Positions 6,058-56,868 of a DNA stretch of 64,000 bases are shown in pieces. A model generated the notes under the pieces. It was not told where the DNA came from. It worked only from the letters and a program-made list of their open reading frames with translations, and did not search any database. Source of the stretch: Mytilus edulis (Eukaryota); the NCBI RefSeq assembly GCF_963676685.1, contig NC_092346.1, positions 68,820,001 to 68,884,000 of the forward strand. The letters run 5' to 3'. Each line of letters opens with the position of its first letter. Position 1 is the stretch's first letter. Position numbers and translations under genes: made by a program.

Positions 6058-9000
6058 ATGGGACAGCTAATATCAAAGTTATATACACTAGTGTCAGGAT
6101 TATCATGTTCAGTGGCAGCAAATATTGTGATGCTGGGTTTGGATTCGTCAGGTAGACATTAATTTATAATTTAATGCAGAATCATTATTTTAAGTTCATG
6201 ATATGCAACACACTTTCAACAAACAGAAACAATTGCCTATGCTTATGCGATTTATACATGGTCCCATATAAACGGAACTCCCAAAAGCATAGAGGGAGGC
6301 CAGCAGCAGTGGATAGTAGTCTCATTGACAATCATATCACATATCCTTATTTTCATAAAAAAAACTCATAATATAACGAGTCGAAAAGCATCACCTACCG
6401 TGTTTAATTGACGTCTTACTTATCTGCATATTTTTTCAATTATATTTCATCAATTGTTGCAAATTATCCTGTAACTGCTGTATCCTATTAACATAATAAA
6501 CAGGAGGGTTTGCAAAAAGGCTTTAACCTACTATCCATTCCATTTTAGATCCCAAAAGAATGTTATAGTTTTCTTTAACTCGATTTACAGGAAAAACAAC
6601 TATACTGTACAAGATCAAACTAAATGAAACCGTTAAAACATTACCTACTGTAGGATTTAATGTAGAAACAGTGGGACCAATCAAAGGAATCAGCCTCACA
6701 GTATGGGACATTGGTGGTCAAGAAAAAATCAGACGGTTATGGCAGCACTACTTGAAAAATACAGACGGTAAAACTCTTAAAATGATTAAATTGAGAGACA
6801 ATCAACAAGTAGTTAAATATATAGTTCATAAGATAAGATTAACATCCAAACCCATAGTAAGAACCGTGAACGCTTCAACTAAAAGGCAGACAAAAAAGAG
6901 GGTTACCTATATATGAGAAAAACCTGAATTATATACATTACGAATTTAGATATTCAAGCAAAAAAGAATTAAATAGGTTAAATTGAAGTTTAAAAATAAA
7001 ATTGCTTAAAAATGGCATCATTTATGTTTGTGGCGACTATAAGACGGAAATAAACTGAGACTTAAAAAATCATGAAACGGAAGATCTAAAAACAAGCTAT
7101 CTACTAAACAGAAATGGTTTACTCCATATACAGTGCTTTACTAACAAACTAACAAACAAACAAACAAACATATATCCGACCTAAAATATATGAAAATAAC
7201 GAACAACTCTTGAAAGTGACAAAGGCACTCCATGAAGAACGTGTAGCGAGAGGTTATGTATGAGTTGTATTTTTAACTGATGATTATTGTAGTAAACTTA
7301 TGAATTGCCAAAGAAAAAAATTAGTGTAGGAAATACATTGATTATTTTTTATTTATTTTACAGGACTTATTTACGTTGTTGACAGCAATGACAAAGACCG
7401 ACTATGCGAAGCCAGAGAAGAACTTTATGGTATATTGAATAGTACGAATTTGAGAAATGTGCCAGTGGTTGTTATAGCAAACAAACAAGATATGCCTGGT
7501 ATGCTTATTTCCTTTCATTTCATTATCTTACCCAATTTTATTTTTTACAGAGTTTGTCTTTAGTGCCTTGTAGAGACAGTAGAGTGCCTCCCCGTGCCTA
7601 AGGTTTATGCTCTTATATTTTTGAAATACTAAGGCTTTTCTACCTCAGGCATAGATTACCTTGCTGAATTTGGCAAAACATTTAGGCATTTTGGTCCTCA
7701 ATGTTCTTCAACTTCGTACTTTATTTGGCCCTTTTAAATTTTTTTTGGATTCGAGCGTCACTGATGAGTCTTTTGTAGACGAAACGCGCGTCTGGAGTAT
7801 ATACAAAATTTAGTCCTGGTATCTATGATGAGTTTATTTACTACCACTTGGTCGATGCCACTGCTGGTGAAGATTTATTTCCCCGGGGGTATCACCAGCC
7901 CAGTAGTCAGCACTTTTTGTGCTGACATGAATTATCATTGATATGGTTATATTTACAAATTAACTGTTTACAAAATTTAGAATTTTTGAAATACTAAGGC
8001 TTTTCTACCTGAGGCATAGATTACCTCAGCTGGATTTGGCAAAACTTTTAGGAATTTTGGTCCTCAATGCTCTTCAACTTCTTACTTTATTTGGCCCTTT
8101 AAAACTTTTTTTTTGATTCGAGCGTCACTGATGAGTCTTTTGTACACGACACGCGCGTCTGGTGTATATACAAAATTAAGTCCTGGTATCAATGATGAGT
8201 TTATTTATTATACTAGATGATGGAGTGTGTGTCTGAGCGAGTACTTCTCTATGTTCATTACTTTAGGAATATTTATCAAAAAGTAGTATTTTAGTATTCA
8301 ACCCCATTCATCTATTTAGTCAGACGTCACTCGCTACCTTGATATACCCTATCTTTCAATAAATTTGTCGGGTAATTTATGACAAATAGCGTTTGACGTT
8401 TTTAGCCGAACAGCTTTCTCTTTTTCACATTATTCAATTTACTGTGTGCTGGCTCATATTCTGGACGCCAGTCTTTGCTCCTTTCTAATAAAATCCACTT
8501 ACCAAAAAACAAATATGAAGCTTAGAAATGGAAAAATATTAAATACTAAACTCGTTCAAAGGTTATCTACACGTCTCAATCTTCGAAATCGCTTATCTAA
8601 AAATACTACCATCGCTAACATTTTTAACAATAAAAATCGTGGTTACCCTTCTATCGATAAGTGTCATGCCAAAAAATGACTTATATGTCCCCGTCTTTCC
8701 ACCAACAATACGATATGGTCCACGTTTAATGGTCGCACATTTTCTTTAAATTTTGAAACTGATATAACTGGAAAACCATTTTATTTACTCACATGAAACA
8801 AACCGGGATGCGGTATTCAGTACGTAGGTGAAACTGGACGATATTTATCTAAACGCACGCAAGAACACCTGTATCGTTTTAAAAGACCCAATAAATTCAA
8901 ACGTATCATTTATCAGTATCTTAAGAAGCACTATCATCAGACAGTCTACCCTCTCGGTCTTAATGATAATATCATGGGAATTGGTAATATATCAAGAACC

Positions 9001-54702: not shown

Positions 54703-56868
54703 ATGGGTTTGTGGTTATCTAACTTGTACGAAGTATTTTCTGAATTTTCTGGATCAACACCAGCAAGAATTCTGATGTTAGGATTGGACGCAGCAGGTAA
54801 TTTGATTTTGTTTTTTTATGACTTATTAAGTTATTATTGCTATTTCAAATTTCTTTATTATTTTTTTGTATAGAACGACATGTTTAATAAATTAGTATAT
54901 TTAATACAAGCAAATAAACTCATCATAGATACTAGGTTTGAAATTTGATATTTACGCCAGAAGTGCGTTTCGTCTACAAAACAGAGGCGGATTTAGAGGG
55001 GGCCCAGGGGGCCCGGGCCCCCCTTTTTGGGAAAAAATTTGGTTGCTTATATAGGGAATCACTGAAGCGTGACTGGAGCGGGCCCCCTCTTAGGTCAGTC
55101 AGTGGGCTCCCACTTATGAAAATTTCTGGATCCGCCACTGCAAAAGACTCATCAGTGACGCTCGAATCAAAAAATGTTAAAAAGGCCTAATAAAGTACGA
55201 AGTTGAAAAGCATTGAGGACCAAAAATTCCTTTAAAGTTTTGCCAAAACAGCTAAGGTAATCTAATCCCGATGTAGAAAAGCCATAGTATTTCAAAAATT
55301 CAAAGTTTTGTCAAAAGTTAATTTATTATTATGAACATATCAATGATAACTCAAGTCACATAGATGTGCCGACTGCTGGACGGGAACCCTCGGGAAATTA
55401 AAACTCCAGCAGCAGTGGTATCGACCCAGTGGTTGTAAATAAATTCATCATAGATACCAGGATTGAAATTTTATATTTACGCCAGACGCGCGTTTCGTCT
55501 ACAAAAGACTCATCAGTGATGCTCGAATCAAACAAATGTTAAAAGGTCAAATAAAGTACGAAGATGAAACTTTGACCTATAATAGTGGTACTACAATACT
55601 TAGCATAGTCAATTAAATTGTGAGCTGGTCAACGGCTGATTCAATTTGATTTAATCTTAATTCTATTTTATTTCGTTGATTTCAGGAAAGACAACGATTC
55701 TGTACAAGATAAAATTAAACGAAAATGTCCATACTATTCCAACCATTGGATTTAATGTGGAGACCGTCAGTCCAGTGAAGGGTGTCAGTTTTACTGTGTG
55801 GGATGTTGGTGGACAGGAGAAAATTAGACGTCTGTGGCAGCATTATTATCAGAATACAGAAGGTAAATTTGTTTAACGTTTTACACATTAGAACGGTGTG
55901 GTTTTTTTAAGACTGAAAACGATATGAAATAATTCTTTACTGGTAAAACAATGTGACTTAACTTATATGATCTTATATGGACTTATTTGTTTTCTTTGAA
56001 ATCTTCAAGTTGGATCGCTTGTGATGCTTTGGAGATTAAAGCTTGTATCATAATCTAGAAAAAAAATTTTAGGAAGTAGAAAAAATGCTGTTTAAATTAT
56101 TATGTCATTTAGAGTAGTTAATTGGAAATACAAAAAAGCAAAAATACCTTGTTAATAATTGAGTGCAAAATGTTGAATTTATTTAACGTATCTTCTTCGA
56201 ATTTCAGGTCTAGTGTATATAGTTGACAGTAACGATAAAGAGAGACTTTCGGAAGCTAAAGATGAACTTGATGGGATTCTTAACAGTGATGAAATGAGAG
56301 GTGTTCCAGTTGTAGTGGTGGCCAATAAACAAGATTTACCACGTAAGGTTTTAAGTTTTTCACTTTCGTCAATTCAAAATCATACAAATTTAATTTACAT
56401 TGGAGTAGAGTTTTTTTTTATCAATACATTTATTTTCTCATATCTTTCTCTTCCCTTACAATGACATGTCGTAGAAGAATTTGTTCGATTTCCATATATT
56501 GGTATATGATAATTTGCAGCATTTCAACATTTAGGAATGGTATATGCAATTTTTTTTTATCATTTTAAAATTTAAAAAATATTAAATTCATAACATGAAA
56601 AATAAACAAAATTATCATTTTGCTTAAATATTATTACAGGAATCATAAATAATAGCTGTTTAACAAAATTAAGAAAATTATTTGACCTGTGATTTTATAA
56701 TATTTTATAGGATCTATGAGTCTGTCAGAAGTAGCAGATGGTCTTGGTTTACCGAAAATGACTGGCAGAATATGGTACATTCATGGAGCATGTGCAACGA
56801 CAGGTGAAGGAATCTTTGAGAGCATGAAGGAAATGGCAAACTTAGTGAAAAATAACGAAAAGTATTGA
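54703..56868 (+). CDS. Canonical ARF/ARL paralogue H (187 aa), recent duplicate of G; exons 54703-54796, 55686-55862, 56208-56342, 56711-56868
   Basis: Nearly identical to G (about 9 substitutions counted by eye); open 564 nt; AATAAA at 57137. Confidence 0.95.
54982..55140. mobile_element. CAG(T/A)GGCGGAT-family MITE with 5-bp TSD CAAAA
   Basis: CAAAA-CAGAGGCGGAT ... ATCCGCCACTG-CAAAA. Confidence 0.8.
55479..55522 (-). ncRNA. Type I hammerhead ribozyme, intact core
   Basis: Minus strand: GCATCA-CTGATGA-GTCT-tttgt-AGAC-GAAA-CGCGCG-TC-TGGCGT. Confidence 0.8.

Follow-up and report, generated by a model that had tools for sequence, protein, structure and literature searches.

Arl19 is a holozoan paralogue in the ARF family of small GTPases, lying near Arl4 and absent from vertebrates; ARL11 and ARL14 are derived from Arl4 (Vargová et al. 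2021, PMC8358228). It was recognised only in 2021 and, because vertebrates lack it, the usual model systems are silent on its function. Arl19 is not a resolved clade according to its authors (Vargová et al. 2021, PMC8358228), and basic C-termini have been reported for many of its orthologues (2025 preprint, bioRxiv 10.1101/2025.10.27.684887). In the literature searched, the name is confined to these two sources. The subject here is a tandem array of ARF-family genes, lettered A to H, in a stretch of 64,000 nucleotides from the mussel Mytilus edulis (C3:68,820,001-68,884,000 of the 1.37 Gb RefSeq assembly), referred to below as the window. The array probably represents a Mytilus-lineage expansion of Arl19, in which B, C, D and F are atypical GTPases that have been kept by selection. 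The Arl19 family is known; what appears to be new is its tandem expansion in Mytilus, with maintained members in which the G3 motif, the catalytic core of switch II, is degenerate.

Family placement and gene architecture

A maximum-likelihood tree (LG+C20 with posterior mean site frequencies; 40 rows, rooted on a mussel ARL6-like gene) places the array members in a starred clade (96/97). This clade also contains a second pair of copies on C3 (K and L), homologues from a protobranch (Solemya), a gastropod (Batillaria), a sea star (Acanthaster) and a sea urchin (Lytechinus), an intronless Arl4-like gene of the mussel, and vertebrate ARL14. The classical ARFs covered by the tree, from which Arf6 was left out, are Arf1, Arf4, Arf5 and protist Arf1; these fall outside the clade, and no array copy groups with Arf1, Arf4 or Arf5 as a member of the ARF1-6 set should. 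Instead, a tree position near Arl4 and a by-eye match to the signature of the Lottia gigantea proteins Arl19a and Arl19b both point to Arl19. The basic C-terminus is likewise present in the tails of G (KNNKKN), I (KTNKKC), J (KNHKKSSKQ), D (KKKKSSR), B (KIRQRETKK) and F (KRTNMIRT). A profile search with exon 2 of D and F, an exon-only query, raised Mytilus proteins alone above generic ARF scores; among PDB chains, exon 2 of G is closest to ARF1. The array genes are thus probably of Arl19 type and not classical ARFs, and their present labels (ARF1_2, ARF6, ARL6-like or "uncharacterized") are corrected here to Arl19-type. A preliminary description of the window had reasoned from the extreme conservation of the ARFs. 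That premise is weakened by the Arl19 assignment, all the more as Arl4, Arl20 and echinoderm Arl19-like proteins are often without the catalytic Gln.

Gene models were built from six-frame motif scans, tblastn searches with exon peptides and splice sites placed by hand. They recover what the preliminary description had listed: eight genes of four-exon type, running from the ATG of A at window position 6058 to the stop codon of H at 56868, with their N-terminal glycines, phase-1 introns, NKQD motifs and G3 sequences. The window is AT-rich (~32% GC) and contains no N. Seven of its copies lie on the forward strand and B alone is inverted. All eight begin with Met-Gly, Gly2 being the myristoylation site, and all have an N-terminal helix region, which in D is about ten residues shorter. 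The introns are GT-AG and phase 1 throughout and occupy three positions common to all copies, the first inside the codon for the P-loop Gly, the second behind switch II and the third following NKQDLP. Exons 1 to 3 measure 94, 177 and 135 nucleotides in most copies, but 64, 174 and 138 in D and 97, 174 and 138 in F. Intact four-exon open reading frames (ORFs) of 178-198 residues are found in A, B, D, F, G and H. Despite their divergence, B, D and F are open, as had been claimed, and their models are residue-for-residue identical to RefSeq proteins XP_071164204.1, XP_071164205.1 and XP_071164207.1, respectively; the splice models therefore agree with the NCBI annotation.

Against the Pfam Arf family PF00025, for which the curated cut-off is 22.3 bits, scores of 25.6-83.5 bits were obtained for ten exons taken from A, B, D, F and G, and the full-length scores of the atypical copies are 134.8 (B), 166.9 (D), 144.8 (F) and 185.4 bits (an intact version of C). 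In a Pfam scan, each atypical copy consists of a single domain, to which no immune domain is fused. All five canonical G motifs are present in A, G, H, I, J and K. G1 and G4 are retained in every copy that has the relevant exon, NKQD (G4) being found in all seven window copies with an exon 3. Where G3 should end in the GGQ of DxxGQ, B has GGP, C has SFQ, D has GGG and F has GCG. The switch I Thr (G2) and the G5 Ala are lost in B, the latter giving way to Gly.

A whole-genome PF00025 scan extends the array beyond the end of the window to C3:68,895,731, where copies I and J are found, giving at least ten genes in ~70 kb. Upstream by 10 Mb is the second pair, of which K is an intact, canonical gene, whilst L is partial, with only exons 2 and 3 in the 16 kb fetched. 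M. edulis therefore has at least 12 Arl19-type copies.

Loss of the G3 motif and its expected consequences

The preliminary description had read the G3 changes as repeated and different losses. This stands for B, in which Q to P is accompanied by loss of the switch I Thr and G5 Ala, and for C (GG to SF), which are separate events; L (G to A) is a further one. It does not stand for D, E and F, which probably share a single change. In the tree, a starred clade (100/94) unites D with F, and the E copies join it with weaker, unstarred values (85/68). The D orthologue has D[IV]GGG in Mytilus galloprovincialis, M. trossulus, M. californianus and M. coruscus alike, and the M. coruscus counterpart of E, the C-terminal part of a fused gene model (P0151), reads WDVGGG and retains exon 4. 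Given this E motif and the attachment of the E copies to the D/F clade, it is most likely that Q to G arose once, in the ancestor of D, E and F, before the Mytilus radiation. Most likely, too, G to C was added later in F, and the E motif was subsequently lost in the lineage of M. edulis, when a deletion shifted the frame. The intact genes of the array thus record about three independent hits, not six.

Across the 169 full-length homologues gathered, 143 have DxGGQ. Exceptions outside Mytilus comprise the Lytechinus Arl19-like DIGYS, an Arl4-like DIGGK and scattered DVGGG or DIGGG sequences in other eukaryotes. In Lottia, Arl4 has Lys at the catalytic Gln position (Vargová et al. 2021, PMC8358228). 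To judge from these sequences, the catalytic Gln has been lost repeatedly in this section of the ARF family. The Arl19-like proteins of the sea urchins Lytechinus pictus and Lytechinus variegatus read WDIGYS, an independent loss of both Gly and Gln outside the molluscs, and the intronless Arl4-like gene of M. edulis (183 residues) reads WDIGGA, with Ala in place of the catalytic Gln.

In DxxGQ, the Gln orients the water molecule for its attack, whilst the gamma-phosphate is sensed by the Gly. The Gln is missing from B (Q to P) and from D and F (Q to G), and the Gly from C and F, yet all four copies keep the myristoylation Gly, the P-loop and NKQD, with a basic C-tail in B, D and F. From these motifs, B and D would be expected to bind GTP and to resist the hydrolysis stimulated by GTPase-activating proteins (GAPs), whilst C and F would bind guanine nucleotide but be unable to complete the conformational switch. 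J, I, H, G and A, along with K, are under strong purifying selection and would act as ordinary GTP switches. The atypical copies may instead be attached constitutively to a membrane and be controlled by expression and lipidation, not by a GTPase cycle, as has been proposed for Arl4, Rnd and RhoH; in Arl4, expression is considered the main level of control. In D and F an MGxC motif (Cys4) suggests anchoring by myristoyl and palmitoyl groups together. By analogy with Arl4 and Arl19, the plasma membrane is the likely site.

Selection, decay, trapping or decoy

Transcripts were sought by comparing region 41300-47299 with two transcript-like M. edulis runs and two raw RNA-seq runs carrying a sister-species label. 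Spliced contigs of F, 681 and 718 nucleotides long, are present in two runs from two studies, and their joints at 41939/43652 (with a 3-nucleotide ambiguity) and 43792/44118 correspond to the modelled introns 2 and 3. The intron 1 joint of G is crossed by one contig and 14 raw RNA reads. For D, a Logan contig of 1108 nucleotides encodes the complete 178-residue ORF, and since the whole ORF lies on a contig of that length it must be a spliced transcript. A retrocopy is an unlikely source of the spliced contigs, as, among the best PF00025 loci in a scan that scored 150 of 250 candidates, none without introns exceeds 41% identity to B, D or F. Two intronless ARF-like stretches with internal stops, on C10 and C4, share no more than 38% identity with D and F and are probably processed pseudogenes of other ARF-family genes. 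In all four runs, very high depth and many loose ends are seen at 41494-41600, 42045-42084, 43300-43499 and 45500-46280; these stretches, in introns 1 and 2 of F and the F-G spacer, resemble high-copy transcribed repeats and are typical of short interspersed nuclear elements or other transposable elements. At 41802, in exon 2 of F, the contig of one run has A>G (Asn to Ser), a possible coding polymorphism.

The copies with degenerate G3 motifs might simply be decaying, B, D and F being young pseudogenes that have yet to acquire a stop codon. Their neighbours E and, in this assembly, C are indeed broken, and B, D and F are only 34-52% identical to one another and 37-47% identical to the canonical copies. 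However, nothing is broken in their ORFs, in the six splice sites of each gene or in motifs G1 and G4. The G5 motif also persists in C, D and F, with Ala to Gly in B. In neutral simulations started from J and allowing substitutions only, the frame stays open in at most 0.6% of trials, even when only half of the observed distance is placed on the derived branch. Codon comparison of paralogues gives a ratio of nonsynonymous to synonymous substitution (dN/dS) of 0.09-0.10 for the G/H/I pairs (dS 0.22-0.36), and of 0.36 for D against F (bootstrap 95% interval 0.22-0.56; dS ~1), with no replicate reaching 1. Protein identity to the M. edulis orthologue is high for D (M. galloprovincialis 99.4%, M. 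trossulus 95.5%, M. californianus 92.1%, M. coruscus 89.8%), for F (M. galloprovincialis 98.4%, M. trossulus 95.3%) and for B (97.9% and 96.3% in the same two species). D[IV]GGG is kept in all five Mytilus species, and the motifs of B and F are invariant in M. edulis, M. galloprovincialis and M. trossulus. Neutral decay had been expected to show as a dN/dS near 1 without expression; the D-F ratio and the spliced F and D transcripts are the opposite of this, and the explanation is extremely improbable. The data support the maintenance of B, D and F by selection. The locus as a whole evolves by birth and death, as had been proposed, with E dead, C frameshifted in this assembly, and G, H and I young duplicates.

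If the atypical copies are maintained, they might serve to inhibit their neighbours or to intercept pathogens. According to the former possibility, C and F, with a damaged DxxG Gly, or B, with its altered switch I, would bind a guanine nucleotide exchange factor (GEF) or effectors unproductively and so damp G, H, I and J. The DxxG glycine is replaced in C (SF) and F (GC), and the equivalent G60A substitution in Ras-like proteins blocks the GTP-induced conformational change and stabilises complexes with GEFs. The atypical genes also adjoin their canonical paralogues and are co-transcribed with them in the same runs. Nevertheless, trapping cannot account for every atypical copy, since the GG pair survives in D and B. 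No GEF is known for Arl19, and switch II, the main Sec7-binding surface in ARFs, has diverged; a role of this kind is unlikely. The preliminary description had suggested decoys or immune sensors, in which hydrolysis-dead copies would mimic ARF-GTP and either bind ARF-dependent toxins and effectors in place of the genuine ARFs or, once bound, set off an immune response. The host is a Vibrio-exposed filter feeder, and the copies are lineage-specific, tandem, faster-evolving than the canonical genes and subject to birth and death, like many immune families of mussels. A predicted structure of F superposes best on GTP-form ARF1 and ARF6, including toxin complexes, although this reflects the shared fold only. 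Set against this, the parent is Arl19 and not Arf1 or Arf6, the known toxin cofactors, and the toxin-facing surfaces, which a mimic should conserve, are the most altered (switch II in B, D and F, and in B switch I as well), so that on sequence comparison the surface recognised by effectors has not been retained. The array genes are not known to respond to infection, the mussel pan-genome paper makes no mention of ARF genes among dispensable or immune families, and dN/dS remains under 1 overall and gives no hint of an arms race at the available resolution. The literature searched contained nothing on ARF expansion in bivalves, on ARF presence/absence variation in Mytilus or on the protein accessions of the array, and the sole match for Vibrio-responsive ARF genes was an unrelated ROCO-like gene. 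The decoy explanation finds no support here and is very unlikely for this array. It is very unlikely, too, that mussels more generally deploy spare GTPase copies, the Arl19 set being one candidate, as baits or guards, permanently 'on' or unable to switch, against bacterial toxins that exploit or modify the GTPases of the host; if they did, this would constitute a layer of GTPase-based innate immunity evolving by birth and death.

Several points weigh against the preferred explanation, a set of Arl19-type, non-cycling GTPases maintained by selection. The preliminary description had spoken of selected, hydrolysis-dead variants. Selection is borne out by dN/dS, orthologue motifs and transcripts, whereas the loss of hydrolysis, like nucleotide binding, is read from motifs alone, and there are GTPases that lack the Gln but can hydrolyse GTP in another way. 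Synonymous sites are saturated in the comparisons with B; the D-F value also fits constraint mixed with episodic relaxation; and the codon-level ratios come from pairs of paralogues, orthologues of other species having been compared as protein only. F yielded no reads in the two raw RNA-seq runs, of which 6% and 18% were read; its expression may be tissue-limited or variable, or the orthologue in the sister species may be more than 5% diverged. Finally, the assignment to Arl19 derives from the present tree and a by-eye comparison with published Lottia sequences, not from the dataset of Vargová et al.

The individual copies and their likeness to known systems

The coordinates of the copies and of neighbouring or related features are collected in the table. 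A clusters with G, H, I and J in the tree, and its exon 2 is a Pfam Arf match. In B, the region of switch I that has lost its Thr reads SQLGMPILT and G5 is CGT. C has four exons, the second of which carries a frameshift of one nucleotide in a short A-run (22933-22934) in this assembly. Both M. galloprovincialis and a further M. edulis assembly have an intact form of 179 residues that likewise reads WDISFQ, and RefSeq has no accession for it between those of B (XP_071164204) and D (XP_071164205); the frameshift reflects either an error in the assembly or a null allele that is segregating. D has a shortened N-terminus (MGICSSKK) and its tail is polybasic. RefSeq also lists a second D isoform of 130 residues (XP_071164206), which reads through the exon 3 donor (28031-28200) and stops just past NKQDVQ, without G5; the M. 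galloprovincialis annotation includes a comparable isoform.

E is a true dead remnant. A frame-shifting deletion at ~32954 has removed about 11 codons of its exon 2, including G3, and neither exon 3 nor exon 4 was found. F has the P-loop GLTSTGKT. An AlphaFold2 model built from a 34-sequence alignment has a mean pLDDT (predicted local distance difference test) of 80, with low values confined to the N-terminal helix, switch I and the interswitch, and matches ARF1 and ARF6 structures with a template modelling score of 0.89 (Foldseek); F is thus predicted to be a normally folded ARF domain. G and H are 95% identical as proteins, with a dS of 0.22, and together with I are young duplicates. The dS values among the three rule out duplication by the assembly. 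Between H and I, and running past the window end, lies a gypsy-like long terminal repeat (LTR) retroelement, whose long open frame carries gag, protease, reverse transcriptase and integrase motifs.

Table. Positions of the Arl19-type copies and associated features (window numbering unless a C-number is given; exons in order of transcription).
Feature	Position	Strand	State	G3	Exons or remark
A	6058..10328	+	intact, 198 aa	WDIGGQ	6058-6151, 6591-6767, 7364-7498, 10138-10328
B	17380..19596	-	intact, 189 aa	WDVGGP	19596-19503, 19104-18928, 18577-18443, 17543-17380
C	22036..25399	+	frameshifted here	WDISFQ	22036-22126, 22858-23033, 23866-24000, 25254-25399
D	27286..29829	+	intact, 178 aa	FDIGGG	27286-27349, 27466-27639, 28031-28168, 29669-29829
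E	32256..32978	+	pseudogene remnant	deleted	exon 1 32256-32352; exon 2 from 32845
F	41304..44281	+	intact, 190 aa	LDVGCG	41304-41400, 41769-41942, 43655-43792, 44118-44281
G	46803..48262	+	canonical, 187 aa	WDVGGQ	46803-46896, 47164-47340, 47630-47764, 48105-48262
H	54703..56868	+	canonical, 187 aa	WDVGGQ	54703-54796, 55686-55862, 56208-56342, 56711-56868
I	C3:68,885,193-68,887,838		intact, canonical		~95% identical to G
J	C3:68,893,400-68,895,731		intact, canonical		most conservative member of the array
K and L	C3:58754279-58761199 (58.754-58.761 Mb)		K intact; L partial	L WDVGAQ	second Arl19-type pair
LTR retroelement	60363-63998	+			gypsy-like
Arl4-like gene	C9:12402356-12402865				intronless
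ARF-like stretch	C10:80920387-80920707				intronless, internal stops
ARF-like stretch	C4:92813161-92813478				intronless, internal stops

The array provides a natural series at one locus, with canonical (J, G, H, I and A), Gln-less (B and D), glycine-less (C and F) and dead (E) members, for which ages and orthologues are known. It allows one to ask what an ARF-family protein does after cycling stops, and it bears on how often small GTPases become constitutive or non-switching.

The closest described counterparts are Arl19a and Arl19b of Lottia gigantea. Like J, G, H, I and A, these have an N-terminal MG and amphipathic helix, KLNE and GEGI[FY]ES motifs and a basic C-tail; they share with the array the sequence SPVKG, a one-residue insertion relative to EYKN of Arf1, and a neighbourhood in the tree with Arl4 and ARL14, apart from Arf1, Arf4 and Arf5. 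The accessions of the two Lottia genes are near-consecutive, which suggests that they are neighbours. However, Lottia has two Arl19 genes, both canonical, whereas M. edulis has at least 12, of which at least four (B, C, D and F) have a degenerate G3 or switch II. Such copies of Arl19 are not described by Vargová et al. (2021) or in the other literature searched.

Arl4, ARL11 and ARL14, a sister or derived lineage of Arl19, resemble the array genes in being myristoylated and in having a basic C-terminus, and the array genes are 33-38% identical to ARL14. Arl4 genes are, in contrast, mostly intronless with an interswitch insertion, whereas those of the array have three conserved phase-1 introns. 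Arl20, another ARF-derived invertebrate paralogue lost in vertebrates, has Arg at the Gln position (WDVGGR, WDIGSR), but it is without the SPVKG insertion and has long C-terminal extensions, and its intron positions differ (Vargová et al. 2021); on these three counts the array does not match Arl20.

Beyond the immediate relatives, B and D, if they work as their motifs predict, would resemble the constitutively GTP-bound proteins Rnd1-3 and RhoH, in which the catalytic positions are substituted, the nucleotide-binding motifs are kept, and regulation is through expression or localisation, not through GAPs. Within the ARF family, the ARF domain of TRIM23 has Lys at the Gln position. These likenesses have their bounds, as Rnd1-3 and RhoH belong to the Rho family and TRIM23 is a multidomain protein, and the GTPase deficiency that has been proven biochemically for these proteins is, in the mussel array, read from sequence.

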